Positions 18,593 to 64,000 are shown, counted from the first letter of the stretch. The stretch: 64,000 nt of DNA from Phallusia mammillata (GCA_965637545.1 OZ281496.1:25668001-25732000), one strand, 5' to 3'. Program-made: numbers and translations. The notes: generated by a model from the letters alone, not told the origin.

Positions 18593-21500
18593 ATGCTGCT
18601 TTCGGTATACACCGTAGTTCTAGGTCTGGCAACTTACAGCAACGGTAAGAAGAATGTTTTTGACAATGAAAGTTTTCTGCGTTGGGTTTATCATCTTTCT
18701 GTTTGTTAATCTATTGTATTTCTTAACGGCATACGGCTGGCATACAGTAACGTGCAACAGCATTAAATCATTTTTCTCTCGCAATACGTAACGTATTTTA
18801 GTTGCAAATCTTTAATAGATAGACAAAATAAACTTCAAAACTATTTTGCGGTCAAGTGGTAAGTCGGTTTCGTGTTGAATAGATATCAACTAAATTTGAC
18901 TGTTGTGGCATGAATTTTTTGTGCACTTTGGGGAGCTTTAACAAAATTGTCCTATAGCATTCAGATGTATGACATGCCATGGGTCCAACTTTGAAGAATG
19001 CGATGTCAATGGAAGAATGACTGAGTGCATGAACAACCAGGTATATCGTTTGGTATTTCCTTTTTACAAGGACCCAACCACGCGTGATGTTAAGAATGTA
19101 GTTCTGTAAGTTTGAGTTAGCTAGTAACAAAAACAACTTGTTCAGTTATTTTAAAGTGTGAGACGTTAATATATGTCCCAAGTGATTGGAGCAGAAGAAA
19201 CGGCAAATATTACGGCATTATTCTTTACAGAATATGTGCGAAACGGTTGTAAGACGTTACGAAAACAAACTTCGAGTCATCAAGGGATGCAAAAACAAGA
19301 TGGCGTGCGAAATAAATCAAGGCCAGGTAGGCTAATTCACTCTACAATACCACAGCTAACACTTGCTAATGCATTTTGCTGCTAGAACGTATTCAACTCT
19401 GGCAAATCAACCCAATGCAACTCGGATCAAAGAAACTCAGTGTGCACTTGCTGCTGTAGTGGTGAGCTTTGCAATGTCGGCCATCCTACCTGTGTAACCT
19501 ACTACCAACCACCACCAGGTAAACTTCACTTGAGCACTGTGTTGGTACTTTTTAGATTTGTTGTCTTTCAGAAGGTCGTTATACTACAACAGTGTTTGTA
19601 ATTCAAATTTAACAAAAACCGAGTCTGCCTAACGTTACAATAACGTGCTTGCATGAGATACATCTGAAAGTAAAACAAAAAAAAGATGTTGCCAAACGTC
19701 TTTCGATCTGGAAAACTTGTAAAATGTAAAACCCTGAAAACCTTTATTACAAAACTTGTATTTTGATAGCAAATGACTGTCCCTCCGTGCCAGCCACACT
19801 ACCTCATGGTGAGATCGTTTGTTTAAATGGGAACAAGCCTGGATCGTTGTGCGAATATCGCTGCACGTCTCAGGACTATGATGTATGGCCTCTACATCGT
19901 GAGCACAACATTTGTACAAACAATGGAACCTGGGCCCATGAACTTCCATGTTGTGCAAGTAAGTGTCTTCTACTGCGTTTTAGACTAAAAGATAAAAATT
20001 CAATTGCCGTCTTTAGTTGTTTACACCTTGAGCACCATCCTTTCTGCATAACACGGGTGGTTAGCTTCTATAGTGCCCTCAACCATCAAGGTTTACTTCA
20101 GTCGGGTGTTTACTACGAGTGTGCCAACCAATTTTCTTGTGAGCTACCTCCACATAACGTTTCATAATACAGTGTAACTGTCATAATCTCCAAAAGTGTT
20201 CTCCAATATTTTGTGTAAATATCTGGTCCATACGTAATCAATAATCATAAAGACTGGTAAGTTTGAAACTTTTCGATACTTTTATAGCTTTGTAAAGATC
20301 ATAAGGTACATTTACTTTTTGCAGGACCATGTCCCCCCTTCTACCTTTACGACGATTTATGGTTGATTCATTATTCCGGACAGGATGCCGAATTGCTGCT
20401 TAAGCACACGATCGATCTGGTTAAAGCGTAAGTAGTATGTATGCAAGCTCCGAGGGACAAAGACGCAACAAATATTTCTTAGGCTTATGTTCCACAAAAC
20501 ACATAGCATGTTTTAAAATAAATTGGGTCAAATGATTCTAGAAGTTAAGTATTGTTTTTCACAGCGGGCGGTATGCTGATGACGCGATGATGGCAGCTGT
20601 AATGTACTTCAGTGGAAAACCAATCGAGTCAAGCATTATCAATTTCAACGATTACAATGGCAGTGAAACTCGGCTTTTTGAGTTAATCGAAGAAAGACTA
20701 AAGATAACCAACGAAGGTATTGTGACAAACTTTACATATCTTGCCTGTATCAGCACATAAACTGCAAGTCATTTTAAATACAAACTGTCTATAGTATATT
20801 GGATGATCACGAGTCTGCAGAGACTCATGAAGGATGGATACAAAAGTGGCGTATATTAACAGATTAAATACTTTGATCAGTCTGAAGTCACTGTAAATGG
20901 GTTGAAAAGTTATTTATTGATCTCTGAAATCTAAAATATTTTGAAACGTTTTTAGATTGGGACTGGAACTGTTTTTGTCTGGAAAATTTATCTTTTTTAA
21001 ATGTGGTAGTATTCACTTCTTAACATTTCACAATCTTGCAGGACCGGTTAACACTGGAGCAGCGATCAAATACGCTCTGGATAATATGTTGACTCCGGGG
21101 GCAGGGCTAAGAGACAGTCGTGTACCGAAAGGAATTAGTCTTCTTACGAACACCAACTCAGATGACGAGGTTAAAGAAATATCAGATGAAGTGAGACGGC
21201 GTGGATTTTGGGTAAGTAACAAATTGCTAAAATACAGGATTTGTTACAGTTGTATTTTGCTAACGATCAAATGGAACTTTTTGACAAGTCGTCAAACATA
21301 GTTGTCATGGTTCAATGCAAAAACACTAACAACCATGGTGAATGTATGCATAGAGTAAGCATTCCTTACTTAAAAAGAATTTTTCAAGTTCAAGTTGTAC
21401 CTATAACGCATATCAAATCTGAAACGTATGTGCTAATATATTGGATATCAGCTACATCACGCAATAACCCCTCCCAGTTTTTGTGAAACAATATGACTTC

Positions 21501-21780
21501 ATTGATACAACAAACTTAATAGATTATGCATACAAGTACTAACTCTTCTGTTAATTCCGGACAACGTCGCATCTTCTATGTTTTGCAGTTAGAAATTTAC
21601 GGATGGGAACTACATGGTTTTAAATTCGACCGAAAACAACTTCTCGAAATAGCTGGGGCTGAAGAGAATCTCTACATTTACGACAAACACCCGGGAGATT
21701 TTACCCACCACGATTTAAACACCCTTACCAGCACCTTTTGTTCAAACCCTTGTGACCACGTTTTGCATGATCATCCTTAA
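18593..21780 (+). CDS. Secreted LU(three-finger)-like + CCP + VWA protein, gene A (389 aa)
   Basis: Exons 18593-18644, 18958-19040, 19231-19326, 19386-19518, 19770-19958, 20325-20427, 20565-20716, 21042-21211, 21589-21780. All introns GT-AG (phases 1,0,0,1,1,2,1,0); 1170 nt open frame. Signal peptide MLLSVYTVVLGLATYSNA; ends FCSNPCDHVLHDHP. Confidence 0.85.
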
Positions 21781-22512: not shown

Positions 22513-24809
22513 ATGCTGTTTCATTGGTTGCAGCTTCTGGTGCTGGTTAGTTACCTGTCGAGCAGTAAAGGTAAGTTACATAAAACTATAGGATATAAGA
22601 CATTTCAAGAATATTCATTTGCGATAAAATACAAACAGTTTTGCCTGTTAAACATTTAGCTTTGGAATGTATGACGTGCGAATGGTCAAAAAGTATTGAT
22701 GAATGTGATGCATCGGGATACCTGTCAGTATGCCGGTCAAATCAGGTAAAATTGCACGTATAAGCCACGGCTACAACATACATATTCCACGTAATGATGA
22801 CAAAAGTGTTTTTTTTTCTGACGAAGAAATCATGTGCAACGACAGTCAGAAGATACAAAGACAGTGTCCTTGTTAGAAAAAACTGCAAAAATCGAGAATC
22901 TTGCAGGAGTAACCAGTTGCAGGTAGCGTAAGGATTGCTCGTACACAATTATTTATACATGATGGTGGCAACGTTTTTTTATTATTATTAGAACTCCAGA
23001 CACTCGGGAAGGTCAACTCAATGCAACTCCGACCAGCCAAACTCAGTTTGTACTTGTTGCTGTAACGGTGACAAATGTAACGTTGGGGGTCTTACATGCA
23101 CAAGAAACTTTCGGGGAATAGAATATGCAGGTTATGTAAATTAATTTACTTTAGGACAGTGATACTGCAGAAACCAGACGCACAGTGTTTTTGCTAACTA
23201 TAATTTTGATGTCCGGTTGTTTCGAGTACCCGTTTCACGCCTTCGTTATTAACGTATCAAGGCATTGGATTTAACCTACTCTATCTACCTTGCAGGCCCA
23301 TGCCCACCTTACCAACTTGTTGATGTTGCAATGGTTATTCATTATTCCGGCGAAAACGCACAAAGACAACTTAAGGCTGCACTGGATTCTGTGTTACACT
23401 TGTAAGTACGTAGCTGTGTGTAGTACGTTTCGGAGAAATTTGTCACAAGAGAACGATAAAATTAAAAGCTCTAAATCGGGCTTGATTAACTGAACTCAAA
23501 CTTTATCAAAGTGGTATCGTGGCGGAAGATGCAGTCAAGTATTCGCTGTTGTACTACAGTGAGGATCCGATCGAATCCAGTCTTATTAAATTCAACGAGT
23601 ACGGAGAAAATAAGACTCGTTTGCTCCAACTAGTGTCTGAACGGGTCAAGATTTCAAACACAGGTCAGTTAAATTCAAAAATTGCAGGCTTTGTCAAAAA
23701 ATATTGTTTATAGAGGGAGGGTCGCAGTGAATGACTGTTAAGGTGACTGTTCACAACTTTCTGCGTAGCAATATATAGCTAGGATGAACCTAAATCCATA
23801 TCTGGGAGCAGCCCTGAAGCGTCCGATTGGCTGATTCGGTATACGTAGACCTGACGTACTGTGACTTACTCTATAGGGGGCATTTAACGATGTTTTGATA
23901 AGCAACCTGTTCAAGTCGCAAGATAAATGGACAATCTGCAATTTTGCACAAACATATAACTTGCTTGGTTGGAAAAAGTACAACTAACCATATTGTTAAC
24001 ACTGTACAACAGGGGACGTAAACACTGGAAAGGCAATAGTTTATGCATTGGAAAACATGCTGACCCCCGAATTCGGTATGAGGGACAACAGAGTGGGAAA
24101 AAGCCTAAGTATATATCTAAACACAAATCCTGATGACGAAGTTAAAGGCCCAGCAGATGAAGCAAGAAAGAAAGGGTTTCAGGTGTGATATAAGTTCGTA
24201 CAATCATGGTCTTAACATCACGACTTAGCTAATTGGGTTCATGGAAGCCCGTTGTAAGCTTAAAATCCCATTTATGTACATAACAGCGCACCTAAGTCAG
24301 GCACGTTTTTATTCTTTTTTTTGCGCTGAAAATGAAAGAGTAAAACACAACGAGTTCAAGAACTTCATTACGGAAATTCGGTCTGCATTGGTCCAGAAAA
24401 TGTAGCAAGAACACAATGATTTTGGATGCAAGTTTTGACAACAAAGCCTAACCAAATTTGTTTCTATTTTCCTTGGCAAAAGCGCCGCCCATTTTACTCT
24501 TTTGTTTCAATGGAATATGGCAACGCGTAAAACAGTATGTTTCCGCCGTATTGCATTTGTCGAAAGAGAGTTTTCCGATTATATTTTGTCGATTCATATT
24601 ATAATGTTTGTCTTTAGGTGTACGTTTTTGGTTTTGAGAACGAAGGATTTAAGTTCGATCGCCGGAAGTTGCTCGACATAGCAGGGGAAGAGAGCCACAT
24701 ATTTACCTACGAAAAGGATTTCTCTAAAATCGATAATGATAAAAGACAACACCTGAAAGACCAGATTTGCTCGAACCCTTGTGATCACGTTTTACACGAC
24801 CATAAATAA
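22513..24809 (+). CDS. LU-like + VWA protein, gene B (332 aa), CCP exon deleted in frame
   Basis: Exons 22513-22570, 22660-22745, 22827-22922, 22992-23130, 23296-23401, 23512-23663, 24013-24182, 24618-24809; 999 nt open. Only a CCP remnant (gatgtccggttgtttcga, 23208-23225) without its acceptor remains. Confidence 0.8.
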
Positions 24810-25077
24810 AAACTTGGCGTTTTACAGCATTTTACACAAGAACAAATCAGTGGACTTTTTTCGCAAAAAATAAATATTTCTAATTTTATTACAAGCAGCT
24901 ACGGTCTTTTGTGGTGCCAAATTACATAAAATAAGTCTTTACGTAGCAGACAAGCCCCGATCAGATTAAGGCCCCCCGCAAAAATGTTGTTAGCCTGTGG
25001 GCGTTTAAACATGAAGAATTAAACAGCACACTTAAACTAGGCCTCTTCGCCTTTAAGACTGGATACAAACGAATGCT

Positions 25078-27806
25078 ATGCAGTTTAGTTGGATAAGTGT
25101 TGCTGCCCTGGTTATCTGCATATCAAATATCAGTGGTAAGTTGAAGATAATTTATTTGTAAAAGTAAATGAAATTTAAAAATAGTTAACTTGCATTTGCT
25201 GCTGTTAGCTTTGCAGTGTATGACGTGCGGGTGGTCGCAAAGTATTGATGAATGCGATGCATCAGGACATCTAAAAGAATGTATGTCAAACCAGGTACAT
25301 TTTCCCGTCAACCACGTTTTTGCAATGCATATTCTATGTGTGATCACTTTTTGTGGTATCTTATTGAAAAGGATTCATGCGAAACAACAGTAAGAAGAAA
25401 CGGAGATAATGTTCTCGTTAGTAAAGCCTGTAAAGACCGAATAGCCTGCAGAAGCAACCAACTACAGGTAACTTAGAAGCTATCAAACATTAACCACTTT
25501 GTGAATTTAACCCTTTATGTGCATTTTTGCTTTAGAACGCCAGATACGCAGGAATGTCAACTCAATGCAACTCAGATCAGCCCAATTCAGTCTGTACTTG
25601 CTGCTGTAATAAGGATATGTGTAATGTAGGAACTCTTTCTTGTGTTGGAAAAAACCAAGTAGCCGAATACGCAGGTTAAACATTCATTGCCTAATTAATG
25701 TATGTTATGCAATAGTGGTCAGTTCCGCTTATGTATATTTTTTACTTAGCACAAGATTGTCCGGTTGTTTCGACCAGTTTGCCTCACGGCAAAATAGATT
25801 GCAACAAAGATAACAGATCCGGGTCTGTATGTGAATATCAATGCACAGGGAAGGATTACTCGTTGTGGCCAAAGGAACGTGAAAACAACATTTGTTTAGG
25901 CAATGGATCGTGGGCTCACAAAAAACCTTGTTGTGCACGTTAGTTTCCAGACATTGTAACAGTGCTTTATACGTAAAAAATCAATAATATTTGTTTGTTT
26001 AATACATTTAAACGTCTGTTGCTCGGTTTATTACAGGCCCGTGTCCACCTTACTACCTTGTTGATATTGCGATGCTTATTCATTTTACTGGAGAAAATGC
26101 AGAACATCTCCTTAAGACCACACTGGAAGACACAGCAACCTTGTTAGTACAACGGTCAAAATCTGGACCATACACTCGTTTAGGGAACTAAGGAATAATA
26201 GGCGATACACTTCGCAGACAGTTTGGTAACATTTGTTTTTTTCCAGCGCCGTGATAGCCGAAGACGGAGTCAAAATCTCAACTTTGTATCACAACGAGAA
26301 CCCTGTCGAATCGAGTCTCATAAAGTTCAATGAATACGGCGAAAATGCAACACTTCTACTAGAACTTATGCTCGAACGGATCAAGATATCCAATAAAGGT
26401 GGGTAGAAGACAGTTTCACCTAAAACAAGCGATTTGAGAACGCTTCGGAAACCGGCTTGATTTGGTATGATTAATAAATGAATATGCCATGATCGCTGGT
26501 CTGCATGATCGCTTTAGGGCTGATTTCAGTATGAATGTATAGCTTACACTAGTGGCTACTGTGTTTATTGAGTTGTCAAATAAATATCGGAATAGGTTTT
26601 AAATTCTTTACATTCAACGGTGGTGTCGAAGGTGGAAATAAGATCCAATCAAAATTCTTAAAGTCTATTGCTGTGACGCCAAATCGGTTGGTTTGAAACA
26701 ACAACCTTCGACGAACAACAATATTGTTATCAAAATAATCTTAACAACAATTCAGCCTCATTCAATATGAGTGACTTACTTAATCAAATAACTGATGACA
26801 CCTCCAAAATTGTAAGCATTTTTGTGTGTCCTTTCTTCCGGCACTTGAAACTCTCTTTGGTTTCTTTTCCTGTCGAACCCCACCCTCCTTCCCTAACACG
26901 GGTGGTTGGTTTATAGGCCCCCCTCGACTGGTCCCACCAACGTTACACAGCTCCCCCCGGCTTGGTGATTGTTCTAGTGCTATTGTGTCGCTGTTCACCA
27001 AGCGAAATAAACTCATCTCATCCCAACAACAGGACCGGTCAACACTGGGAAGGCAATGCGGTATGCCTTAGACAACATGCTCATCCCCGAAGCGGGAATG
27101 AGGGACAGCAGAGTCGAAGGAGGTTTGGACATTTACATAAACACAAATCCCGATGACGACGTCAAAGGCCCAGCAGATGAGGCAAGAAGGAGGGGCATCC
27201 AGGTGTGATATCTATATACAGTTACATTTATGTGTAAACTGTCTCCAAACTTGTACAGAAAACAACTGATTGGTTCAAGTAGACCCCTGTTGCTTTCTGT
27301 GTAACAGATTCTCTTATTTATGTCAATATGTGCAAAGCAATAGGAACGTTGTAACATTAGTTAAAAGGTTTGATGATAATACGTGCCGTTAGTTCAATTT
27401 TACCAGAGGTTTTCAACTGGTGGCAAATTTACAGTTTGAAAAATGATTGGTTTGGCGCGATTAGCGAGTTATGGAAATTATCATCTTTCAAAAGCTGCAA
27501 AACGGTAATGTATAGAAAAAAAGTTCTGACAGAAACAGCAAGACGTTTTGATCTACCTTTTTTGTTTGCATTGCTAACGGATCTGAAAAAAAACTTATCT
27601 AACCATTTTTTTAGGTGTACGTGTTCGGTTTTGAGATAGGCGATTTTAAATTCGACCGTAAGAAGTTGCTCGATATAGCTGGGAAAGAGGAACATATCTT
27701 CGTTTTCGACACGGATCTTATAAACCTCAGTGAACAAGACATAGAAGAGCTGAGCGGACATTTTTGTCAAAACCCTTGTGATCACGTGTTGCATGATCAT
27801 GAATAA
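25078..27806 (+). CDS. LU-like + CCP + VWA protein, gene C (395 aa)
   Basis: Exons 25078-25135, 25209-25294, 25372-25467, 25536-25674, 25750-25938, 26037-26142, 26247-26398, 27033-27202, 27615-27806; 1188 nt open. Confidence 0.85.
26750..27024. mobile_element. 275-bp insertion with 7-bp TSD (AACAACA) at the exon-8 acceptor of gene C
   Basis: AACAACA at 26743-26749 and 27025-27031. Paralogs D and F have the empty site ttaacaacag|GACCGG. The internal motif taacacgggtggtt also occurs near 20048 in gene A intron 5. Confidence 0.65.
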
Positions 27807-28488: not shown

Positions 28489-28510
28489 TGACGTCACGTG
28501 CTGTATAAAA
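28489..28510 (+). promoter_or_regulatory. CRE (TGACGTCA) / E-box (CACGTG) / TATA cluster upstream of gene D
   Basis: tgacgtcacgtgctgtataaaa about 80-100 bp before the ATG at 28588. Gene E has taacgtcacatgttgtataaaag at 33148-33170. Confidence 0.5.
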
Positions 28511-28587: not shown

Positions 28588-31500
28588 ATGCAGATTGTTT
28601 GGCAATTTCTCGTGTTGTTGATAACCTACCTGTCCTTTGTTCAAGGTAAGCAGTCTAAATTTTCACATTTAAATTCAGTAAGATCCAAAATGTTTAACAT
28701 TTAAGTATTTTGTCAGCTTTAAAGTGTATGACATGCGAGTGGTCGCGAAGTTTAGATGAGTGCGATGCGTCGGGTACTCTGTCAGAATGCATGCCAAATC
28801 AGGTAAGATTGCACGTTTGGTTGTTCTATTCATTTACAAATGCTGATTATGTCCATGGAGAATGATAAAATCATGTTTTATACAAAAGGAATCATCGTTC
28901 GTGTTTATGAAATTTTCCCGTCTGTTATGTTTATGAGATATATATTTTATGTGTGACTTTTGTTATATTTTATGACAAAGAGATCATGTGAAACAACAGT
29001 AAGAAGAAACGGAGATGATGTTTTTGTCAGTAAAAACTGCAAAGACCGAATAGCCTGCAGAAGCAACCAACTACAGGTAACTATAGGAAGCTATCAATTT
29101 AAAAAACATTAAAAACACCTTAACCCTATGTGAAATTTTACCCTTTTCGTAAACGTTTGCTTTAGAACTCCAGATACGCAGGAAGATCAACTCAATGCAA
29201 CTCAGATCAGCCCAATTCAGTCTGTACTTGCTGCTGTAATAAGGATATGTGTAATGTAGGAACTCTTTCTTGTGTTGGAAAATACCAAGTAGCCGAATAT
29301 GCAGGTTTAACGTACTTTGCTTAATTAATGTATGTTATGCAATAGTGGTCAGTTTCGCTCATGTATCTTTTTAACTTAGAACAAGATTGTCCGGTGGTTT
29401 CGACCAGTTTGCCTCACGGCAAAATAGATTGCAACAAAGATAACAGATCCGGGTCCGTATGTCAATATCAATGCACAGGGAAGGATTACTCGCTGTGGCC
29501 AAAGCAACGTGAAAACAACATTTGTTTAGGTAATGGATCGTGGGCTCACAAAAAGCCTTGTTGTGCACGTAAGTTTTCAGACGTTTTACGGAAAAATACA
29601 GCTTGTTTTTTAATACTTTTCAACCCTATGTTGCCCGTTTTATCGCAGGCCCATGTCCACCTTACTATCTTGTTGATATTGCGATGGTTATTCATTTTAC
29701 TGGAGAAAATGCAGAGCACCTCCTAAAGACTACACTGGAAGACGCAACAACCTTGTTAGTTCTAAACCGTCAAAATCCGCACCCAATACTTTTTGTTTAG
29801 GGAACTAAGGAATAAAAGGTGATATACTTTGCAGAAAGTTTGGTATTATTTGATTTTTTTTCAGCGCTGTCACAGCTAAAGACGCAGTCAAAACCTCAGC
29901 TATGTACTACAACGAGAACCCTGTCGAATCCAGTCTTGTCAAATTCAATGAATACGGCGAAAATGCAACACTTTTACTGGAACTTATGCTTCAACGGATC
30001 AATATATCTAATAAAGGTGGGATGAGGACAATTTTAATTTGGTTTAACGTCCTCAATAGGCCTGGCGTACTATGATTTATAGATAAAAATGACGTGATAG
30101 CTAGTCTGCAAGGAGGATTCAGTGCTGATTTCGGTATCAATGTATAGCTTACACTTGTGGCAACTCTGCTTATTGAGTTGTTAACTAGCTGTCGGAATAA
30201 GCTTCAAATTCTTTACAATTTGCCGGTTGTGTGGAGGGTGGAAATAGAGTCCAATAAAAGTCTTTAAGTCCCTTGGTATCTTGCCAAATCCGTGAAGACG
30301 GTTAGTAATAACAACCCTCGACGAACAACAATACTATTATGAATACAATTTTAACAACAGGACCGGTCAACACTGGAAGGGCAATGTGGTATGGCTTGGA
30401 CAACATGCTCACCCCCGAAGCAGGTATGAGAGACAGCAGGGTCGGAAAAAGCTTGGCCCTTTACATTAACACAAATCCCGATGACGACGTCAAAGGCCCA
30501 GCGGATGAGGCAAGAAGGCGGGGTTTTCAGGTGTGGTATTGTGTGACATAACGTTTGTGTGCGAACTGTCTCAATACTTGTACAGAAAAGATTTTTAACT
30601 GGAATTTACTGTTTCAATATGAAAAGTGGTTGGTTAAGCGCAATTACACTCTAAAAAAACTTCATTCATTTTTGTGAATCTTTTGAAAGATACAAGTCTT
30701 TTTCAATCTTTCACGGCGTCGTTGTGTGAAGTTTTTATTCACAGTACCAAAATTGCGAGAAAAAAGTTTTTTATTGGGTGCGATAATCCCTTTTTTCCTA
30801 CTATGAATTTGCGCGCCAATCGTAGAGAAATGAGAAGGCGCTCCGATTGGCCAGTTCGTTGGTGAGGTCATAATTGAATTATGGCTAACAATGCATTCCA
30901 TCCTCACGAACTCCCCTCGCTCAAAAGTTGCCCAGCATGCCTTAGTATCTGGCAGCCATTATATCGCGAAAAGTGCGCGAATATGCTGCTAAACGGTTTT
31001 CGGAATTGAAATAGGCTATTGCTGCCAGGCATAAAGTTTAACCGAGTATTGCTCCTCCAGCAGTTTTATTGTAAAAAAACGTCGATTATTTGTAGTCGGT
31101 AACATGAGAATGGTTACATCTAAGTGGATGCGATATAAAGATAATGAAAGAAAAGGAAATTTGCTCACTGGATATCAAGGGATTGTTATTCAAACGAAAA
31201 GAGCCCAATTGACATGGCAATTGAAGAAGAGATGAAAAGTAAGATACTTTTTATTTTGTTTAGGTTTTGGCACTGGTGTTCTGTGTTTATTGATAATAAA
31301 TGTCTAACATTATTTCTACCTGTTTTAAACGTTGATTTAGCAATGATGGAAAAGGGTTATGAAAACATCTACAAAATAAGCACTGCGATAAACTTTAGCA
31401 TAAAATGTTGATTTGTACATTGTTATAACAATATGTGTTGTGGGTTTGTGACAGACTATTGTTTGAAATAAGGGAGCATTTAGCACTAACCAACTGCTAA

Positions 31501-32454
31501 TATTTTGCTTTTACAGAGAATCTATCAGCATTATACCTGTTCAAATGCCATCCCTAAACATGAAACGACAAGATGATACTTTTCTGCGATTTGTTTTGGT
31601 ATCGTTGGGTCAAAGGTTTAACCTGACGAGTTCTTTCTTAATTTGGAATCGCCAGTGACATTTGGCCAGAAGGGTCAGACTTGTTGTGTGCATTTGAAAA
31701 AATGTTTGCTTCCTTTTGAAGTGCACCTGTTTCAAGTTTTATCTCAATGTGCTGTGATCACTGCCTCTCTGATGTGTCAGTGTACACGTGGTGTGATTTA
31801 TGCATTTCGTTTCACAATAAAAAGACACCACTGAAGATTTCAGTATTTAAAAGATTTTTCATGTGAGGTTTCAACTATTCTAATCATTCAAAAATCTCAA
31901 TTAAACAAATCATTCAAAAAAAGATTAAAAACTGCCGAATTCAATCTTTCCATTCATTTGAAAAAATGAATCAAGTGAATTACTCAAATCGGTTCAATCT
32001 TTGAAAGGTTGGCAGGAAATTTCATTCAAACTTCATTCATTTTTTTTTAGAGTGTAGCGAGTTATGTAAAATATCATCTTTATAATGCTGCGAAACGGTA
32101 AACTATAGCATAAAATTACAACCATAGAGTCGATAAATGATAAGCTACAAGCTTATAGCAAAAAAAGTTATGACAGTAACAGCAAGACGTTTTGATTTCC
32201 CTTTAATTTGCATTGCTAACGTATCTGAAATAATCCTTTTCCACCGTTTTGTTTTTCTTAAGGTGTACGTGTTCGGTTTTGAGATGGGTGACTTTAAATT
32301 CGACCGTGAGAAGTTGCTCGATATAGCTGGGGAAGAGAGTCATATCTTCGTTTACGACACAGATTTTTTTAACATCAGTGAAGGAGACATAGAAGAGCTA
32401 AACAGACATTTTTGTCAAAACCCTTGTGATCATGTGTTGCATGATCATGAATAA
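28588..32454 (+). CDS. LU-like + CCP + VWA protein, gene D (395 aa), chimera of E-type 5' and C-type 3' parts
   Basis: Exons 28588-28645, 28717-28802, 28981-29076, 29166-29304, 29380-29568, 29649-29754, 29865-30016, 30361-30530, 32263-32454; 1188 nt open. Confidence 0.85.
30647..32054. mobile_element. 1408-bp non-autonomous DNA transposon (CACT-ended, CMC/EnSpm-like) in gene D intron 8
   Basis: TIR CACTCTAAAAAAA...TTTTTTTAGAGTG, TA duplicated at 30645-46 and 32055-56, subterminal TTCATTCA repeats. Empty site in gene C (gcgattagcgagttatg, ~27467). No transposase ORF seen. Superfamily is an inference. Confidence 0.8.
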
Positions 32455-45750: not shown

Positions 45751-46690
45751 GATACGTAAATGTAAAAAAGGATATCCTTTCAGTGTGTTGTAAAAATGGT
45801 GTCCGAAATAAAAAATAAAAGGTGGTTAGTCTTTGTCACAATTTTTCTTTGGATGCAGTTGCATTGCAGAACCAAACTCCGTGCAACAAAACAGACAAAA
45901 CACTCAAAAAAGTAATTTCGTACTGCTGAAACCCATAAATTGTAAATGTGAATGTATTTGTTGAAGTATTTTGTACCAAAATTACATAAAGGTCTTCCTA
46001 CGTAATAATAAAAAAACGTATATTGACGATAACTACGTATCATGCGATCAGACATAAAAAAGAGTCCCGTACCTAAGTGTTTGTGATACTTGCATTGATT
46101 AATTTGATAAACTGTTACGTATACCAATCCCCCATAGCAAATTGAATCCAAAACAGTAACGCAAATGAATGTGATTTTTTCAGCAGCAGGCACAATTTTA
46201 TTTATTGCATATTGCACAGTTCTAATTAAGTTTTCAATGCCCCTTTTTTGCGAAACAACAATTGAAAACAAAAACTTGACTGCTAGACACAACAATTTTA
46301 TTTAAAACAGTGCTTCCGGTGGCAACTAAGATTTTTAGGCGAAAGACAAACTTGTACTGACTGACTTAGCTCCGGGATAGATTGAAGGTACACTTGATTC
46401 CGGAATGAAACCGTTTTACATTGGTTCGACCAACTACAAAACCGACTTACACCATCCAGAGGTTCAAAAAAACTTGTCATATAGATTCTAAAATTGACAT
46501 TAAACACCAGATAGAGAAACGGATGTACATGAAAACACATTAAAAACCAACTCCAAGCCCGAGGTCCTGGCTTTACACGTTTAGATCATTGTTGTAAAAA
46601 TGTTTTTCCCTCGGGCGATCAATGGCCTCAAACTGATGAGCTATTGCCAAACTATATTAGCAGTTTTTGCAGGCTGCTATAACACCGACG

Positions 46691-50284: not shown

Positions 50285-52808
50285 ATGAAAGCAGTGGTAT
50301 TTTGCCTTGTGGTAGCGACATACGTTCTTTGCACCGAATGTAAGACGTTGTTATATGTTATGGAAGTGTTAGAGATGAAACAGAATATGGATGCTTTACA
50401 GGTCTCAGATGCATTACATGCTATGGATCAGGAAGTGTTGATGATTGCGACGTAAATGGAAAACTCAGGCAATGTATGCCTAACGAGGTGTGCAATAAAA
50501 CTGTTTAGTGTAAAACGTTTGTCTACTACCACAAAACGATTTGAGACATTTGTTTAGCTATCATGTGAAACAACTGTGAGACGTTCAGGCGGTCATGTAA
50601 CTGTCATGAAAGGATGCAAGAACTCACGAGCATGCAGGGACAACCAAATGCAGGTAGAACGATACTGTATACTTCTGTGATGAAAAGTAATGGCAACTAA
50701 AAGTTTTGCAGGTCAATGTGTGAATAACATGGATTTCGTTTTTTCACCCAGCTGTCTAAAGAGTCCATGTAAATCGACTAAATATATGAAAATATTTATT
50801 CTTGCAGAATACAAAATTCTCCGGAAGGTCAACTCAGTGCAATTCAAATCAATTAAACTCAGTTTGTACTTGTTGTTGTGACAAAGAAATGTGCAACATT
50901 GGAATTTCAAACTGCAATCTTAACTACCCACAAATCGGTTTTGATGGTGTGTTAGTTTGTTTTTTCCTCGTATAGAACAAATGGATAATATTTGTGTTTG
51001 CTACAGCAAAGGACTGTCCTGTGGCTTCAACATACTTTCCACATGGCAACGTAAAGTGCAACAACGAGAACAACGCTTGTGAATATCAATGCACAGAAAA
51101 TGACTTCTTTGTGTGGCCAGTAGGAAGCGAAATTAATGTTTGTCTCAGCAATGGATCATGGGCTCACGAAAAACCATGCTGCGCACGTAAGTACATGGTA
51201 CACAAAAAACACAAACTTTAGACTAAATGTTTCAAATACAAGAGAACCGTTTTGTTACAACAGACATACAGAATTCTTACTACCAACAAAGCCGCTGGTA
51301 GTTTTTTAATTTTGCTAGCTGTTTGTGAAACGAGCATAAGCCGTAAAAGCGTCACTTAGATACTTGGCAGTTGGGCAATAGCTACAACTAACATAAATTG
51401 TAACCTTTAGGTAAGTGCATTTTTTGCAGGTCCTTGTCCTCCATACAGAATTGCAGACAGCACAATGATTGTTCATCACACTGGGGAAAGTGGAAAACGC
51501 TTAATGGAACAGCTGCCTAGCGCTATAACATAGTTAAGTACACATGTTGAAGCTCTGTGTCTCAAAGATACCGTTTTTTATATTTTGTTCTTAGTGCGCC
51601 TATAGCAGAAGACCTTGTCAAGTTGTCCGTGATATCCTTTGGTGATGAAGTGGTTGAATCGAGTCTCGTGAAGTTTAATGAATATGGGGCGAACGAGACA
51701 CTATTGATAAAACTGTTGCAGGAAAGACAAGTAATTACCGATGAAGGTGAGTTGCTTTACATTTCGTGTTTGTTAAACCAGGATTTAAATTTACATGAGC
51801 GTTACATAATTATGCTTTCGGGAAATTTAATAGTAAGCAAAGTTAACCTAATATATGATTGCTTTACAGCATGCTGTTGCAACCAAAAACTTGTGTCGTG
51901 ATTGGTTTTCAGTTTAATCTATTAAGCATAGTGTATCTAATTACGATCTTTAGGTCCAGGTGATACAGGACTCGCCATGCAATACGCCCTGGATAATATG
52001 TTGATCCCCGAGGCTGGCATGAGAACCAATCCCATAGTAATGAAAACTTTGGAACTTCACACTAACACGCAACCGAACGACAACGCGATAGAAGTTGCAA
52101 AGACAGCAAGAGAAAGTGGCTTCTTGGTGAGAATCCTTTATAGTAGCGTATAGCAGTAGTTCTCAAACGGTGCGTCGCGGCGCCCTGCTGCGTCGTTTCA
52201 ATTTTCCAAGGGCGTCGCAGAATAGTTCCTTTTCGTGGCTTTTTGTTGTTGTATCAGTAAACACAACTTTAATAATACGTTTCCTCATTAACTTTTATTT
52301 GCTGGTGCGTTACAAGTCCAGAAAACTTTTCCAGAGGCGTCGCAATAAAAACAGTTTGAGAACCACTGGCGTATAGTATTACCTAAAAAATTCTAGGCAC
52401 TCTAAAAAATGTTAAATTCGCATTTTTTACCATTTTTGCACAACAACCGTTCCATGAAAATATAATATTTGACTTGCAACAAGATGTTTGTGAATAAACT
52501 GTCCGTATATGACTTCGGTAAACCAGCAGTTCCTACACTTGTTGGGTCCAAATGTTAGTGATTAGATCTAAAACATAGCCTGTCGTGTTTTATACATTAA
52601 TTTAATCTCTTTATTTTAGGTCTATGTTTTCGGATTTGAAATTGGCGGTTTTAAATTTGACCGCGACCAGCTCGAAAAGATTACCGGAGACAAGGAGCAC
52701 GTATTCTTATTTCAGGGTGATTACGGAGATTTAACGCCGCAAAACAAAAAAGACTTGAATGATCATTTTTGTCCCCATCCGTGTGATCACAGTTTGCATA
52801 ATGAGTAA
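50285..52808 (+). CDS. LU-like + CCP + VWA protein, gene J (390 aa)
   Basis: Exons 50285-50339, 50402-50487, 50558-50653, 50808-50946, 51007-51186, 51430-51532, 51595-51746, 51954-52126, 52620-52808; 1173 nt open. TATA-like ctataaat near 50245. Confidence 0.85.
52154..52368. mobile_element. 215-bp hAT-type MITE in gene J intron 8
   Basis: TIRs cagtagttctcaaac / gtttgagaaccactg; perfect 8-bp TSD GCGTATAG at 52146-53 and 52369-76. Confidence 0.9.
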
Positions 52809-53372: not shown

Positions 53373-55978
53373 ATGAAAGCAGTACTCCTTTGTATTCTGA
53401 CAGCCGCGTACATTATTAGAAGTGATGGTAAGAATTTTTTGATTAAATATCGTTATAGAGTGCTATTGTATAAAACTTACAAACTGTTTAGGTCTCAGAT
53501 GCGTAACATGTTACAGTTCAAAAAGCATCGATGATTGCGACGCAAGCGGAAAACTCAAGCAATGTATGTCCAACGAGGTGCGTTGTAAAAGGGTAAAGTA
53601 AGCCGTTGTACTGCTGTAACCGGGCTTTAAGCACTAAAAGTTTTGTGTTGTTTGACGCCATACCAACTCCCGCAATCAATCTTTATGTAAAATAATGTTG
53701 AAGTCACTAACTCATACATGCTCCACGAAGCCAAACGGTATATGCTTCGCTGTGAGAGTATATGTTTGTAAACAAATATTATTGGAATTTTTATTGTTCA
53801 GAACTCATGTGAAACAACCGTGAGGCGTTCACGCAATCACATAACGGTCATGAAAGGATGTAAAGCATCACCATCATGCAGAGACAACCAAATGCAAGTA
53901 AGGTGTAGGAAAGTAAAATGAACATTCGAGTTTTTTGTCTGATTGGAACAAGATAAGTTTTTCCATCTTTGTTTTACAGTATTATGTAAATTGTGCCGTT
54001 ATAGTAATATTTATGGCTGCATGAAATTATTTTGTGGTGCAGAACACTAGATATTCGGGAGGGTCCACACAGTGCAACTCAGATCAAGACAATTCAGTTT
54101 GTACTTGCTGCTGTAACAAAGACATGTGCAATATTGGAATTCCTAACTGCAATTCCAATTACCCACAAGCCCAAAATGATGGTAGGTTTTCTTCGCTTTT
54201 CTCTATTAATACCTAAACGGCCCAAAACGAATCTTTTTATAATTATAATGACCTACAGCAATAGACTGCCCCGCAATGTCAACCAAGTTTCCGCATGGCA
54301 ACGTAAAGCGTCATAACGACAAAGTTTATGAATTTCAATGCACGGAAAAAGACTACTTCGTATGGCCAGAGGGAAACGACATAAACATATGTCTTGGAAA
54401 TGGATCGTGGGCTCACGAAAAACCCTGTTGCGCACGTAAGTTTATTTCAAAACGCAATTGTAACTTACCGCCGAATAATAACATGAAAGAAAACCCTACA
54501 TTAAACAACAAATAACTCGGCAATAAAAAGTATCCTAAAAAGGCGACAATCACTTGCAAAAAAGGTGCTATGTTCCCTTCGTATGTCGTTTGAAGGCTCA
54601 TGTTTTTTTAAGCAAAGCTTGGCGAGACAGAACTAAAACGGTGCACAAACATATATGTTTTACAGGCAACTGTCCTCCATACAGAATTGCGGATCAGACA
54701 ATGCTCGTTCATCATACTGGAGAAAGTGGGAAACGTTTAATGCAACAGCTTCCCACTTCAATTGTATAGTTGAGTACAAACGGACAAACTGCGTTCAAAC
54801 CTACGTGGTTATGAACAAAATTATTAAAAATGTTGTCTTTACAGCGCTCCGATTGGAGAAGACGCTCTGAAATTATCAGTGATGTCTTACGGTGACGACA
54901 TTGTTGAATCAAGCGTTGTGAAGTTTAACGAATATGGAGAGAACGCAACACGATTATCTGAATTACTACGGGAAAGACAAGTCATTTCTGAAGAGGGTGA
55001 GTTGCACTTGTTTTCTTTTTTAACTTTTTACTGAAAGTCAAGCAGATAAAAGCAATTCGATAATTGTTTGAATTTTGTCCAACATACCTTGAGTCGTAGT
55101 AGAAGCTCAGTGATGTGAATTTCGCTGAGGAAAATTACACAATTTCACAAGTGTGAAATAGGTATGCCATGCTTATCAGAAGAAGGTGAAAAGGATCCAA
55201 TAGGTGCACACATGAGAAGTGGACCTTTTCCTTTGGTTAATAACTGCTACAATGTAATTGTTCTTATGTGCTAATAACTTGGTTTTAGTCAATGTTCATG
55301 TACAGAAATAGTTAATGACGCTTTCCGTTTGTTTCCTTACATCACAAACCAAATCAAAACTTTTCTTCTCGTCTAGGTCCGGGAGACACAGGGCGTGCGA
55401 TGCAATATGCACTGGACAATCTGATAACACTAGAATCTGGCATGAGACCCAATAAGATAGTACTAAAATCATTGGGACTTCACACCAACACGCAGCCCAA
55501 CAGCAATGCCATAGAAGCAGGAAAAAGAGCAAGAGAACGTGGAATTCTGGTATGAAGCAATACAAATAGTTGTTTTTGTAACTTTTAATAAAACGCATGT
55601 ACGTATGTTTACTAAAAAGAAACTTACATGTACTAACTTTGGAAGTCACATAACAGCCTCAACATTTGAGAGCAACTGTTTCCAAACAGTTTCGTAAATA
55701 AGTCAAGTTACAAGCAACTGATTTTGAAAAGCTCGTTTCAATTACATTGTTGGTCGTATTTTTATATTGAGTGTATGTTTTTGTTTCAGGTCTATGTATT
55801 TGGGTTCGAAATTGGCGGGTTCAAATTTGACCGAGAACGACTGGCTGAGATTACTGGAACCAAAGACCACTTGTTTATATTCCAGGGTTATTACGGTGAT
55901 TTAACGCCAGAGAATATCGAAGACCACAACTCACATTTTTGTCCACATCCGTGTGACCACAGTTTACATGATGAATAA
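53373..55978 (+). CDS. LU-like + CCP + VWA protein, gene K (389 aa)
   Basis: Exons 53373-53427, 53492-53577, 53802-53897, 54043-54181, 54259-54435, 54666-54768, 54845-54996, 55377-55549, 55790-55978; 1170 nt open. The CCP has lost two Cys. Confidence 0.85.
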
Positions 55979-57109: not shown

Positions 57110-60100
57110 ATGAAGATTGTAGCATTTTGTTTTGTAGTGGGTTCGTTCATCGCATGCACGAAAGGTAAGAAGTTATGAGGTACTCAAAAGAATAATGACA
57201 ATCCAAATGCATTGTGTTTAGGTTTAAAATGTATGACCTGCTACACTACTGGTAGTTTTGAAGACTGCGATGTAAATGGAAAACTGAAGCAATGTATGCC
57301 AAACCAGGTTAGTGACACTGAAAACAGTTAAAACACGAAACGAATAAAAGGACGTCTGAACATAGTTCGTTATTCCATTCGTTTAGGACTCATGTGAAAC
57401 AGTCGTGAGACGCTCAGGAAGTCATATGACTGTCATGAAGGGCTGCAAGAATTCACGAGCATGTGAAAACAACCAAATGCAGGTACAAAATATATGACAC
57501 AAACTTATCTATTCCAAAGTACGTAAGTACCCGAATAAGGTATTATTTTTGGCTTAGAACAGAAAATACTCGGGAAGATCAACTCAGTGCAACGCGGATC
57601 AAATTAATTCAGTTTGTACCTGTTGCTGTAACGACGACCTTTGCAACGGTGGAGCGCCCACTTGCGTGGAACATTACAAACCCACACAACCTCGTAAGAC
57701 ACATGGCAATAACGTGAGAAATATTGAACAACATATACCTAGAGGTTTTTGTTTAGTTCTAGACTGTCCTCAAGTTCGAGAGAATTTTCCCCATGGAAAA
57801 ATTGAATGTTACAACGAGAACAAAGCTGGAGCATTGTGCGAATATCAATGTACTGCAAAGGATTATGCTGTTTGGCCGCCAAAGCGAACTACAAATGTTT
57901 GCCTCGCTAATGGAACGTGGGCACACGAAGAGCCGTGCTGCGCACGTAAGTTGTGTATGCTGAAGCTTTTATCAATAAATGTGTATTCATTTGGAAAAAT
58001 AGCCGCAATAAAACTATTGCCCTACATAACCTTACTTAAAAAAATCGATGCACACGAACTAAGTAAACCATCTTCAAAACAAAATGTACTTGCCTTTTTT
58101 CCTACCATACATTTAAAAGCTTGATTCATAATCTACAAAGCATTAAGTTGTGTTGTTCATTTTCTTTTTAGGTCCATGTCCACCCTATTATCTTTTCGAT
58201 AACATTCTGATGTTTCATTTCGGGGGTGAGGACGGTACACAACAACTTGAAAACACATTGAACATGTTTAGCAGGTGAAAGTTGATGTGCAAAACACAAT
58301 ACTGTAGGATTCATAGTACAAAAACACAGAAATTTAATAACCTTTTTGAGTGTGCAATACAACAAAGTCTTAGTTGAATACAAAAATGAAAATGTGGACA
58401 GACTAACTTTAAAACATGTTTTTGTAAAGCGCACTAAAAAGTGTTTTCAAAGGATTTTTTAGCAAAACGTCGTTTCAAATTATACTCTTGCTTGACTACC
58501 GTTTTGTTCACCTGAAATACCTCTTTGGTTCATTGTTACCAAGTAAGGAATTTTGACAGTTAAAAGTATGATGTTTCATGTTTGCAGCTCACCAATAGCA
58601 GAGGACGCCCTCAAAGAAGCTGCACTCTACTTCAGTGGTGAACCGATTGAATCAAGTGTAGTTAAGTTTAACGAATATGGAGCAGATTTAACACGCATGG
58701 TTCAGTTGATAAAAGAAAGAATTAAAGCGGTGAATGAAGGTACGTCCAAGGTTCTAGTGATAACACAAATAGCACCCAAGAAAAACTTTGATACTCATTG
58801 TAATACCATACTCTGTTGAAAAGCCGCAAAGGGTAACATATAGATTTATTACTGGGATAACCGCTGCGTTGATGCAGGCCAGCGATCACGACACACTAAC
58901 ATAATACGTCAGCTCTACTGAAGGCGATATACAGGGTGAATCAATATTCCGAACATTCCCAAATGGCAATTAGACATATAGGCTATAAACATCCAGTCTG
59001 TGTCGGCATTCGGAAAAGCACATGGTTTGACGTTAGAATGCACGAAAAGTATACCATAAAACAATTTGCAGAATCGGTTTTAACCAACGGACACAGACAA
59101 ATGACTGACACGACTGAACGCTAGTTATAATACGTTTAATTTTGTTACAGGAGGCCCGGATGTGGGCGCTGCCATTCAATACGCTATGGACAATCTGTTT
59201 ATCCCTGAAGCTGGTGCAAGAGACGATCGTGTACCAAAGAGTATCACAATTTTGACCAATCGAAATCCAGACGACGACGCAACTGAAGTAGCAGAAGAAG
59301 CAAGAAGACGTGGCATATTGGTAACAACCGCTCTGCCGTTTTTTGGTCACACAGTCCGATGTTGATTAAGATACCAAATGTTCACATTAGACTATAAATA
59401 GCATCTAACCCAGGGGTTCCCAACCTGTGGTACGCGTACCACTAGTGGTACGCGATAGCTTTTCAGGTGGTACGCGAGTAGCTTCCGCTTTTTTCACGTA
59501 AACCTGAATTTACAACTTTATATTTTGTTTATCTGGTTTTGTTTTTCAAAAAAATCTCCAAGGTTCTTCTTATTGTTACGTAACTATTCCTGTTGTTTCG
59601 TATCATTACGATCTTCAAAATACAGGTTATGTCAATTGTCAACAAGAAGCACAGTTGCTTTGAAACGCCGTAGAATGCTGTGAGACAGTGGGCATTAATT
59701 ATATGTCAAATGATTGCCCTTGATAGATATCATCTACTATTTTATAGCTTAGGCTACAAATAGCGTTGAATAATGCTAGTGTTGTAAGCTAAAATAGATC
59801 AGGATAAAATGTTCAATAACGGTTACGTATGAAGAGGTAGTTTATGCTTCGTAGTAATGCATAGGAATGTGAGCAGGTATTTTCCGTCACGATGATCATC
59901 AAGTCAAAAATTTGAAACCGACTATAGGTGCGCACGGAAATGAATTTTGATGCGCTGCCAGTTTACACCGCGCATCGACCAATTGGTGGACAGTAAACAA
60001 AAATATCATTAAATTTCGTTGTGGTGCTTTAGTGTTATTTTAGTAGGCCAATATTCTTCTTCTGAATACAATATGATTCGATCAAATTAGTTGTTCTGCA

Positions 60101-60593
60101 AGAAGTGGTACGCGTGGCAGTACAGAGCGTCCAAGTGGTACGAGATCGTAAAAAGGTTGGGAACCCCTGATCTAACCACTACACCGAAGCATTTTGTGCA
60201 GTGAATGTAAGATTTCAAAACCCTCTGCAAAAGGTGGATTTCAAACCGAAAACAAGAGCCTATTTTAGGCAGGTGTTTTACTGCAACAACGGATGTTTTG
60301 TAAACTAATTGGGACAATAAAAATGCAACACAACAATATCTAACGATATACCTTGTCCTTGGAGAAAGCTAAAAGTCCTTCATGTTTGTTACCTTTTTCA
60401 GATTTACTTTCTTGGAACTGAAGTAGACAACTACAAATTCGACCGTGAGAAGATACTAGACATAACTGGAGAAAAAGAGCACATTTATATATTCGGGCAG
60501 TCGTTCAACACTCTCACTGCTGACCTTCTAACAGATATGACCAATCACTTCTGCCAAAACCCATGTGACCACGTCCTGCACGATCACAATTAA
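57110..60593 (+). CDS. LU-like + CCP + VWA protein, gene L (392 aa)
   Basis: Exons 57110-57164, 57222-57307, 57387-57482, 57558-57693, 57757-57945, 58172-58274, 58588-58739, 59151-59320, 60402-60593; 1179 nt open. Confidence 0.85.
59411..60169. mobile_element. 759-bp non-autonomous hAT element in gene L intron 8
   Basis: 16-bp perfect TIRs caggggttcccaacct / aggttgggaacccctg; 8-bp TSD ATCTAACC at 59403-10 and 60170-77; subterminal gtggtacgcg repeats. Absent from paralog M. Confidence 0.9.
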
Positions 60594-61397: not shown

Positions 61398-64000
61398 ATG
61401 AAGATTGTATCATTTTGTATCATTGTAGCTTCGTTCATCGTCTGCATAAAAGGTAAAGCACCTGTTTACTATTCGGTAAGATATGCCAAATAAGATGTGT
61501 GATGTTTAGGTTTGAAATGTATGAACTGCTACAGTTCTGGTAGCTTTGAAGACTGCGATGTAAATGGAAAACTAAATCAATGTATGCCAAACCAGGTTAG
61601 TGAAACAGCAGACGATTTTTAAATCAAACATTAAACAAATGTTTAAATTAATATAGATTAATATTCCATTCGTTTAGGGCTCATGTGAAACAGTCGTGAG
61701 ACGCTCAGGAAGTCAAATGACTGTCATGAAAGGCTGCAAGAACTCACGAGCATGCAGGGACAACCAAATGCAGGTAAGGTATTATGTGTCACACACTTAT
61801 CTATTCCAAAAAACTTTCCATAGTAGTCATTAATGATATTATTTTCTATTCAGAACACAAGATACTCAGGTAGATCAACTCAGTGCAATGCGGATCAAAT
61901 TAATTCAGTTTGTACGTGTTGTTGCAACAAAGACATGTGCAACGCTGGAGCGCCCACTTGTGTGGAATATTACAGACCTGCACAACCTCGTAAGCCACAT
62001 GCCAGTCACGTAAGTAATATGGAACAACATATACCTTAATGTTTTTGTTTAGTTCAAGACTGTCCTCAAGTCCCTCAAAATTTTCCCCATGGCAACATTG
62101 AATGCCATAATGAGAACAGAGGTGGAGCAGTGTGCGAATATCAATGTACTGCAAAAGACTACGGTGTTTGGCCTCCAAAGCGAACTACAAACGTTTGCCT
62201 TGCGAATGGAACGTGGGCACACGAAGAGCCCTGCTGCACACGTAAGTTGTGTATGCTGAAGCTTTTAGAAGTAAATGTGCTTTTAATCGGAATGAATAGC
62301 TGCAATAAAACTATTGCGTTACACAACGTTACTTCAAAAAAGCAGATGCACTTCAGTAAAATATCCTCAAAGCAAATTCTACTTGACAACTTGTCTCTCA
62401 CAAACATTTGGAAAAAGGTTTCTTAATCTAAAAAGTGTTTAGTTGTGTTGTGCATTTTCTTGTCAGGACCGTGTCCTCCCTATTTTCTTTTCGATGCCAT
62501 TATGATGTTTCATTTCGGGGGTCCTAACGGCGAACAACAACTAGAAAACACGCTGCAGGTGTTTGGCGGGTAAGAGTTAACTTGCAAGACATGCAGATTA
62601 CAAGTGTTGTTACTTTTAGAGTTTGCGTTGCTACAAATTTTCAGTTGAAAAAACAGAAACCGATTTTTGCAAAATGAAAACGGTAGTACTGATTATTAGA
62701 GAATAAGTTTCTTCACATCACACTAACATCGGAAAAGTTGTTTCAAAAGACTTGAAATTAAAAACTTTAAAGTAAAAATTTAACAATTGTTGCCTGACTA
62801 GCGTTTTATTCTCTTATGTTGAAAGTATGGTGTTTAATGTTAGCAACAAACCAATACCTGATAGTTTATAGTTTGCAGTGTACCATTAGCAGAGGACGCC
62901 TTTAAAGAAGCTGCATTCTACTTCAGTGGCGAACCGATTGAATCGAGTGTAATGAAGTTTAACGAGTACGGAGCAAATGCAACACGCATGGTTCAATTAC
63001 TGAAAGAAAGAATTAGGGTGGTGAATGAAGGTACGACTAGCGTTCTGGTTATAAGGTGACAAATAGCACCAAAAAAATCGAATGCTTATTGTAACTGTTG
63101 GTGGCATATTGTCAGTTGATAACATCCTTTATTTAAAAGGCAGCGAAGGTTCACATATAGATTTATTACTGGCATTAGTACCAATGCGCTCATGCAAACC
63201 AGCTGTAAAGATACACCATTTTAATCACAGTAGGCCTGGTCTTTTGAAAGCGTCATACAGCTTAAAACCGGTCTGTTCAGCACCCTAAAACAACTAGACA
63301 TAGGAAACATCAAGCATGCATGGTAAAATTATCATAGTTTGACGTTAGAATGCAGGACAAATACACCATAAAACACTTTACAGGATCGGTTTTAACTAAT
63401 GGACACAGACAAATGACTGTTGAGCTCAAACGTAAGTTACAAATAAATAATTTCATTAAATTGTTTGTTGCAGGTGGCATGAATGTGGGAGCAGCCATTC
63501 AGTACGCTATGGACAATCTGTTTATTCCTGAGGCAGGTGCAAGAGACGATCGTGTACCGAAGAGTATCTCGATTATTACCAATCGGAATCCAGACGACAA
63601 CGCAAAGGAAATAGCAGAAGAAGCAAGAAGACGTGGCATTTTGGTGAAATGTTAACCGTTTAGTAAATATGGTTGTTATTGTCACCCAATGTTCACATTA
63701 GACTATAAACAAAGCTAGAAAACAAAACTTTCCACAAAGGTGGGTTAAAACATAATACAAGAGCCTATTCGAGGCTGGTGTTTACTACAAAGCAAGATGT
63801 TTTGTAGACTAAATGTGGGTACAATAAAAATGCCACATAGCAGCATGTAACCACCTTGCCCTTGACACAAGCTCGGATTTAACTGATAAAAACACAAAAA
63901 ATTTGGTAAAATTGCTTACCTGAGCGTTTGAGAAACGTGCAAGTAAGATAGAGAAATCTAAAATTCCGTTATGTTTGTTAAATTGTTTCAGATTTACTTT
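61398..64000 (+). CDS. LU-like + CCP + VWA protein, gene M (3' end beyond the window)
   Basis: Exons 61398-61452, 61510-61595, 61678-61773, 61854-61989, 62053-62241, 62467-62569, 62879-63030, 63474-63643; exon 9 starts at 63992. Closest to gene L. Confidence 0.85.

Follow-up and report, generated by a model that had tools for sequence, protein, structure and literature searches.

What becomes of the ligand-binding face of a von Willebrand factor A (VWA) domain when both of its metal-binding Asp residues are replaced, and replaced by the same two residues in every copy of a gene array? The question is raised by a 64,000-nucleotide stretch of the genome of the ascidian Phallusia mammillata (GCA_965637545.1 OZ281496.1:25668001-25732000; we refer to this whole stretch, which has 38% G+C without N runs, as the window). 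From ~18.6 kb to its end, the window holds 13 tandem genes on the + strand, here called A to M, that encode secreted proteins with a VWA domain. In all of them the two Asp residues of the MIDAS, the metal-ion-dependent adhesion site, are His and Asn. An initial annotation of the window took this to suggest a new site on the ligand-binding face, with a different metal, a pH-sensitive contact or a His/Asn dyad. Our analysis points instead to a MIDAS that was dismantled in steps, and we think it probable that the domain is metal-independent, with the His and Asn serving as structural fillers.

Spliced models of the 13 genes confirm that the first MIDAS Asp is His and the second is Asn in 13/13 copies. 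The local motifs reported in the initial annotation are all present (HYSG, HFTG, HFIG, HHTG and HFGG around the His; TNTN, LNTN, INTN, TNAQ, SNVQ, TNTQ and TNRN around the Asn), and the bounds it gave correspond to splice sites: 20325 is the acceptor of the first VWA exon of gene A and 63643 is the donor of the third VWA exon of gene M. At the five MIDAS positions, canonically D-S-S-T-D, the copies read H-S-Q-V-N (gene A), H-S-E-V-N (gene B), H-T-E-V-N (genes C, D, F and H), H-T-K-V-N (gene E), H-I-K-V-N (gene G), H-T-E-G-N (genes I, J and K), H-G-E-P-N (gene L) and H-G-P-M-N (gene M). Where strand beta1 ends, D-x-S-x-S has become H-x-[S/T/I/G]-G-[E/Q/K/P] in 13/13 copies, with the second Ser replaced by E, Q, K or P in every one. 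The canonical Thr, five residues before the Ala of G-x-A, is V in genes A to H, G in I to K, P in L and M in M. The Asp of T-D-G, after strand beta4, is Asn in 13/13 copies and Asp in every relative outside the array. The initial annotation was right that the Ser/Thr positions vary, but the Thr that it described as becoming Val in L and M lies two residues downstream of the canonical position, which is non-Thr in 13/13 copies. In addition, the beta1-alpha1 loop is 3 residues shorter in every short (one-sushi) member of the family, including the array, than in the long (multi-sushi) members with an intact MIDAS. At most one of the five coordinating residues thus survives in any array protein. 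Judged from these residues, the canonical MIDAS is lost in all copies, and the site would no longer be expected to bind Mg2+ or Mn2+ as a MIDAS does. We also considered that the invariant Asn (Asn306 in gene A) might be N-glycosylated, and rejected this because it is not in an N-x-S/T sequon.

These assignments depend on the alignment register, which is secure because two alignments agree. Long family members with an intact DSSSS motif, most of which also carry G-T-x-T-G and T-D-G, align at the MIDAS positions of the array, and a family profile aligned to the PDB puts the His on D151, the Val on T221 and the Asn/Asp on D254 of the integrin alpha2 I domain. The same profile also sets the His on the Asp of D-G-S motifs in collagen VI alpha3 domains.

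The domain is a genuine VWA, as first annotated. Single exons were too short for searches of Pfam and the PDB, giving VWA only at E = 0.14 and spurious PDB matches to beta-trefoil designs. For structure and search work we used P0039, an mRNA-derived Phallusia mammillata protein (present in UniRef and nr) taken as an allele of gene A, as a proxy for the array proteins. Against Pfam VWA (PF00092; cut-off 23.8), P0039 scores 45 bits, P0013, from another Phallusia locus, 63 bits, and P0021, a long form, 120 bits. An AlphaFold model of P0039, made with a 57-row alignment of family members and exons from the window, has alternating strands and helices over residues 193-376. Its predicted local distance difference test score (pLDDT) is ~90-98 for most residues from 191 to 360, and its linkers and C-terminal tail are poorly defined. 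In Foldseek searches with this model, the top matches were collagen VI alpha3 N2 (template modelling score, TM, 0.84) and N5, with TM up to 0.85 on the target, followed by the integrin alphaM and alphaX I domains, von Willebrand factor A3, mussel PTMP1 and anthrax toxin receptor 2. TM to solved VWA domains ranged from 0.71 to 0.85, and collagen VI alpha3 also ranks first in sequence and profile searches. In the model, beta1 ends with His200, and Asn306 immediately follows beta4; the 10-residue blocks that contain them have a mean pLDDT of 89 and 96, respectively. The strands beta1 and beta4 lie next to each other in the VWA fold, where the MIDAS pocket is made by their C-terminal ends; therefore, His200 and Asn306 should lie side by side.

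When did the two residues arise? We searched a profile of the last exon against 1.8 billion representatives and obtained only exon-sized fragments and a handful of full-length proteins, and all sources that we looked up are ascidian; two word-indexed searches gave 8 and 5 proteins. Ciona intestinalis, C. savignyi and Phallusia yielded short-form homologues. The eight short forms outside the array (from Ciona intestinalis, C. savignyi and other Phallusia loci) have His at the first position in 7/8 cases, the exception being P0040 with Asn, and Asp at the second position in 8/8. The long forms P0021, P0034, P0036 and P0038 (from Ciona, C. savignyi and Styela clava) have D-S-S-S-S and the second Asp in 4/4 cases. 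In all, the first MIDAS position is His in 19/20 short forms and Asp in 4/4 long forms, and among the columns that are at least 85% conserved in short forms, the His alone separates short from long cleanly.

The 13 array copies group together as one clade (support 100/99), and Asp is present in P0013, the sister of this clade. Because of this, the Asn reflects a single Asp-to-Asn change on the array stem that was inherited by all copies, and independent convergent fixation in 13 copies was rejected on the same ground. Codon usage fits a single inherited change: the Asn codon is AAT in L and M and AAC in the other 11 copies, and the His codon is CAC only in I and CAT in the other 12. The distribution among relatives indicates that the His predates the divergence of Ciona and Phallusia and that the Asn is younger. 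The argument that divergent copies had fixed the same two residues, and so signalled a new site, is not supported in the light of this result. The initial annotation had also counted variation at both positions among relatives as evidence against a new site; such variation is seen opposite the Asn (Asp in 8/8 non-array short forms) and is largely absent opposite the His, where only P0040 differs.

Nor are the two sites special in their invariance. Among the 12 copies without in-frame stops (gene H was left out and gene M was counted only where present), 36 of 201 VWA columns (18%) are invariant, and the binomial probability of at least two invariant positions among the five of the MIDAS is ~0.22. 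We conclude that invariance of the His and Asn is not enriched over the background of the domain. The genes are under purifying selection, which holds both residues. The median pairwise ratio of nonsynonymous to synonymous substitution rates (dN/dS) is ~0.13-0.21 across the LU, sushi and VWA domains, with dS >1.4; the array clade totals ~4 substitutions per site, and its copies are only 40-85% identical. Within the array, entropy is 0.81 in the beta4-alpha4 and beta5-alpha5 loops and 0.71 in helix alpha3, compared with 1.17 for the domain. The beta1-alpha1 loop is average (1.23), and helix alpha1 and the beta6-alpha6 region are the most variable. Much of the conserved surface signal comes from generic VWA consensus positions that are common to the long forms.

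We propose the following history. The ancestral protein would have been an LU-(sushi)n-VWA protein with a complete MIDAS (DSSSS, Thr, Asp), a layout that survives in the long multi-sushi relatives. In the short one-sushi subfamily, the MIDAS would have been taken apart early, with His replacing the first Asp, loss of the second Ser and of the Thr, and a shortening of the beta1-alpha1 loop by three residues, while the second Asp was kept. During a Phallusia-specific tandem expansion, the second Asp would then have changed to Asn once, on the array stem, and passed to the 13 copies. Ordinary purifying selection would since have kept the His and Asn as a polar pair, joined by hydrogen bonds, that occupies and supports the emptied pocket beneath the shortened loop. 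The VWA would bind its partner without metal, as do the N-domains of collagen VI and von Willebrand factor A3. The metal independence of the domain and the structural role of the pair thus appear to be the most plausible outcome of this history.

Loss of the MIDAS is in itself ordinary, since it is common for a VWA domain to have no working MIDAS. A conserved MIDAS is absent from most VWA domains of collagen VI (PMC3919171). The best structural match to the array VWA (TM 0.84), and also its best sequence and profile match, is collagen VI alpha3 (N2 and N5; PDB 6snk and 4igi), whose domains are extracellular VWAs like those of the array; in several of them, the second Asp is replaced by Ala, Gly or Ser. 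In our alignments, however, the motif of the alpha3 domains still begins with Asp (DGS...), with no His there, and the domains lie in long beads-on-a-string VWA arrays within a collagen chain, with no LU or sushi domain, unlike the array proteins. The A3 domain of von Willebrand factor binds its ligand away from the MIDAS (PMC3919171). This domain and A1 are high-ranking structural matches that bind ligand without using the MIDAS, although their domain context is different and neither has a His/Asn pair. In A3, part of the DxSxS motif is kept. Integrin alpha I domains and the VWA of anthrax toxin receptor have the fold of the array domain but bind Mg2+/Mn2+ and ligand through the MIDAS. Complement factor B and C2 resemble the array proteins in placing sushi (CCP) domains directly before a VWA in a secreted protein, and C2 structures are among the Foldseek matches; however, in those two proteins the MIDAS is intact and a serine protease follows at the C terminus, whereas the array proteins carry a three-finger domain at the N terminus and lack both the protease and the MIDAS.

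The closest comparison is with the long ascidian LU-(sushi)n-VWA proteins (the Ciona 'E-selectin-like' P0021 and P0034, C. savignyi P0036 and the Styela 'P-selectin-like' P0038), which belong to the same family. Like the array proteins, they combine an LU domain with a VWA that is joined to sushi through the junction C-C-x-R-x-C-P-P and is followed by a C-x3-C tail at the C terminus. They differ in having four to approximately twelve sushi repeats, a beta1-alpha1 loop that is 3 residues longer and, in most, a MIDAS that is complete (D-S-S-S-S, Thr, Asp); in P0036, Asn takes the place of the Thr.

Several observations weigh against the His and Asn as simple fillers of a metal-independent domain. 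The His has been kept since before the Ciona/Phallusia split and is the cleanest signature of the subfamily, which is more than a random filler needs. In principle, the non-array relatives could bind Zn, Ni or Cu through the His combined with the retained Asp and a Ser/Thr. On the former MIDAS face, variability in the beta4-alpha4 and beta5-alpha5 loops is below that of the domain (0.81 vs 1.17), which a functional surface would also show. Contact between the His and Asn, and their burial, are deduced from homology.

Some of these observations would also be expected if the former MIDAS face were still a working surface, with the His, the Asn/Asp and the conserved loops contacting a shared protein or glycan partner without metal. 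Both the low variability of the beta4-alpha4 and beta5-alpha5 loops and of helix alpha3 and the His shared by 19/20 short forms across Ciona intestinalis, C. savignyi and Phallusia are consistent with such a surface. However, most of the conserved loop residues (those of NTG-x-A-x-x-YA and D/N-x-x-S-D-D, and the helix-capping Asp that precedes L-x-x-I-A-G) belong to a general VWA consensus that is also found in the long forms and in unrelated VWA domains, and the positions that adjoin the His (+1, +2 and +4) vary among copies. We regard a direct contact surface as unlikely.

If the site had a new chemistry, as the initial annotation suggested, the His might bind a transition metal (Zn, Cu, Ni or V), sense pH, or form a dyad with the Asn or with an Asp. 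Several features speak for the idea: the age of the His; its pairing in non-array relatives with Asp and usually with Ser/Thr at +2; and a second, adjacent His (HH), which genes I, J and K share with P0013 and P0037. Moreover, the host is a vanadium-accumulating ascidian. Other observations weaken the idea. The acidic partner has become Asn in the array, a poor metal ligand, and the other three MIDAS positions are non-ligands (V/G/P/M; E/Q/K/P; and sometimes I/G), leaving at most two plausible ligands, in a site whose metal-wrapping loop is shortened. P0040 carries Asn in place of the His, and invariance of the pair is not enriched over background. We therefore consider a remodelled chemical site quite improbable, and neither the His nor the Asn is yet evidence of a new metal site. 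A subfamily-wide version, in which the His (with an Asp partner in Ciona and Asn in the array) and an adjacent aromatic residue or second His make up a non-MIDAS site on the old ligand face, seems to us similarly doubtful. If it were true, a His site that binds Zn, Cu or V, or that makes a pH-switched contact, would be a binding chemistry undescribed for VWA domains, in an ascidian-specific secreted family.

Plain decay in a dying gene family, with the shared residues reflecting only recent common ancestry, would account for the in-frame stops of gene H and the lost sushi exon of gene B, but it is extremely unlikely and was rejected by a dN/dS of ~0.2 at dS >1.4, by the open frames and conserved intron phases of 11 of the 12 copies that lie wholly inside the window, by the retention of His and Asn in copies that are 40-85% identical, and by the transcription and correct splicing of genes A, E and F.

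These conclusions rest on the gene models, which were built as follows. Gapped tblastn with a whole template protein merged exons across introns, and per-exon searches with phase-constrained choice of splice sites were used instead. The exons of gene C were read by hand, and its exon peptides and intron phases then guided the choice of acceptors and donors in the other units. By tblastn, each unit contains the same ordered exon set, with 9 exons and conserved intron phases: one signal-peptide exon, three for the LU domain (a Cys-rich Ly6/uPAR-type three-finger domain), one sushi exon and four VWA exons that end in a conserved tail, C-x3-C-D-H-x-x-H-D. The sushi exon scores 21.7 bits against Pfam Sushi (cut-off 20.7), and the LU domain has a weak Pfam match, to Toxin_TOLIP, in the relative P0040. 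The full short-form layout (signal peptide, LU, one sushi, VWA and a C-x3-C-[D/N]-H tail) is found in 10/13 copies. The exceptions are gene B, which has no sushi exon, gene M, which is cut by the end of the window, and the pseudogene H, in which the tail has Gln instead of His.

Genes A, E and F are transcribed and correctly spliced. The model of gene A is identical to P0039 at 384/389 residues and equal to it in length. Spliced contigs from four runs in two studies, labelled as RNA by an automatic guess, confirm 8/8 introns in gene E and 5 in gene F, with GT..AG sites as predicted; the confirmed junctions include those of exons that carry the His and Asn. The junctions of exons 3, 4 and 6 in gene C, set by consistency with the paralogues, are homologous to joints in genes E and F that the contigs confirm.

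Genes A to D occupy the first part of the array. Gene A (18593-21780, 9 exons, 389 aa) encodes a signal peptide, LU, sushi and VWA, with codons for His200 at 20369-20371 and Asn306 at 21149-21151. The five residues at which P0039 differs from it include Tyr201 to Leu, which adjoins the His, and Cys149 to Gly in the sushi domain; these differences could be allelic variation or sequencing error. Gene B (22513-24809, 8 exons, 332 aa; His 23340-23342, Asn 24120-24122) has no sushi exon and keeps its frame: the introns that flank the missing exon are both phase 1, and LU joins VWA in frame. Gene B thus looks like a natural exon-loss variant and not a broken gene. Gene C (25078-27806, 395 aa) has His205 at 26081-26083 and Asn312 at 27140-27142. 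Gene D (28588-32454, 395 aa) has the His at 29693-29695 and the Asn at 30468-30470; its last intron (30531-32262) is ~1.7 kb, compared with ~230-650 bp in most paralogues and ~1.1 kb in gene L, the nearest in length, and may hold an insertion.

The RNA-confirmed genes E and F and their neighbours G and H follow. Gene E (33252-35353, 393 aa; His 34226-34228, Asn 34699-34701) uses two acceptors 6 nt apart for its intron 4 (33831 to 33924/33930) across RNA runs, giving isoforms that differ by two residues in the LU-sushi linker. Gene F (36421-38820, 395 aa) has the His at 37605-37607 and the Asn at 38162-38164, and gene G (39171-41835, 394 aa, motifs HFIG and TNAQ) has them at 40607-40609 and 41268-41270. 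Gene H (42693-45759) is a pseudogene with in-frame stops in its third LU exon and its sushi exon and with a last-exon stop that comes a few codons early; the His (44023-44025) and Asn (44936-44938) are still present.

The remaining copies are genes I (46691-49476, 389 aa, motifs HHTG and TNTQ; His 48272-48274, the CAC codon; Asn 48869-48871), J (50285-52808, 390 aa; His 51474-51476, Asn 52064-52066), K (53373-55978, 389 aa; His 54710-54712, Asn 55487-55489), L (57110-60593, 390 aa, motifs HFGG and TNRN; His 58216-58218, Asn 59258-59260, an AAT codon) and M (61398-63643; His 62511-62513, Asn 63581-63583, also AAT). The model of gene M comprises its first 8 exons, and the last exon was not found before the end of the window at 64000.

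Two further features of the locus were noted. The C-terminal tail C-x3-C-D-H-x-x-H-D(-H), in the last exon of every gene (for example, at 27750-27803), is strongly conserved and His/Asp-rich, and has low pLDDT. The tail is also found in the C. savignyi long form P0036, and a shorter version occurs in Styela P0038; the Ciona intestinalis long forms keep only C-x3-C. Lying at the end of the domain opposite the MIDAS face, it might bind metal or act as a tether in its own right. Upstream of gene A, positions 1992-18047 (+ strand) contain six intronless open reading frames of 267-320 aa that are 64-92% mutually identical, have ~5-8 hydrophobic segments each and gave no match to Pfam. A tandem array of orphan multi-pass membrane proteins thus directly adjoins the array of secreted proteins.

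Relatives in Ciona carry automatic names, 'matrilin-2' for P0012, 'MUP-4-like' for P0022 and P0031, and 'E-/P-selectin-like' for the long forms. Genes regulated during larval tail regression in Ciona include KH.L132.4 matrilin-2 (in tail-tip epidermis), KH.L112.30 MUP-4-like and KH.C11.274 Ci-sushi (PMC8495957). A role for the family in metamorphosis is only a lead, based on shared automatic names that may belong to different genes.

The finding by itself opens no long-standing question. Our literature searches returned nothing specific on an LU-sushi-VWA family, or on His-substituted or degenerate MIDAS sites. What is mildly new is an unstudied and apparently ascidian-restricted family of secreted three-finger/sushi/VWA proteins that is split into MIDAS-intact long forms and MIDAS-dead short forms. 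A single Asp-to-His change, kept since before the divergence of Ciona and Phallusia, is the cleanest marker of this split, and provides a simple sequence signature for annotating LU-sushi-VWA genes. With an intact and a dismantled MIDAS in one family and one genome, these proteins are a paired natural system for asking how a VWA domain stabilises its ligand face without a metal.

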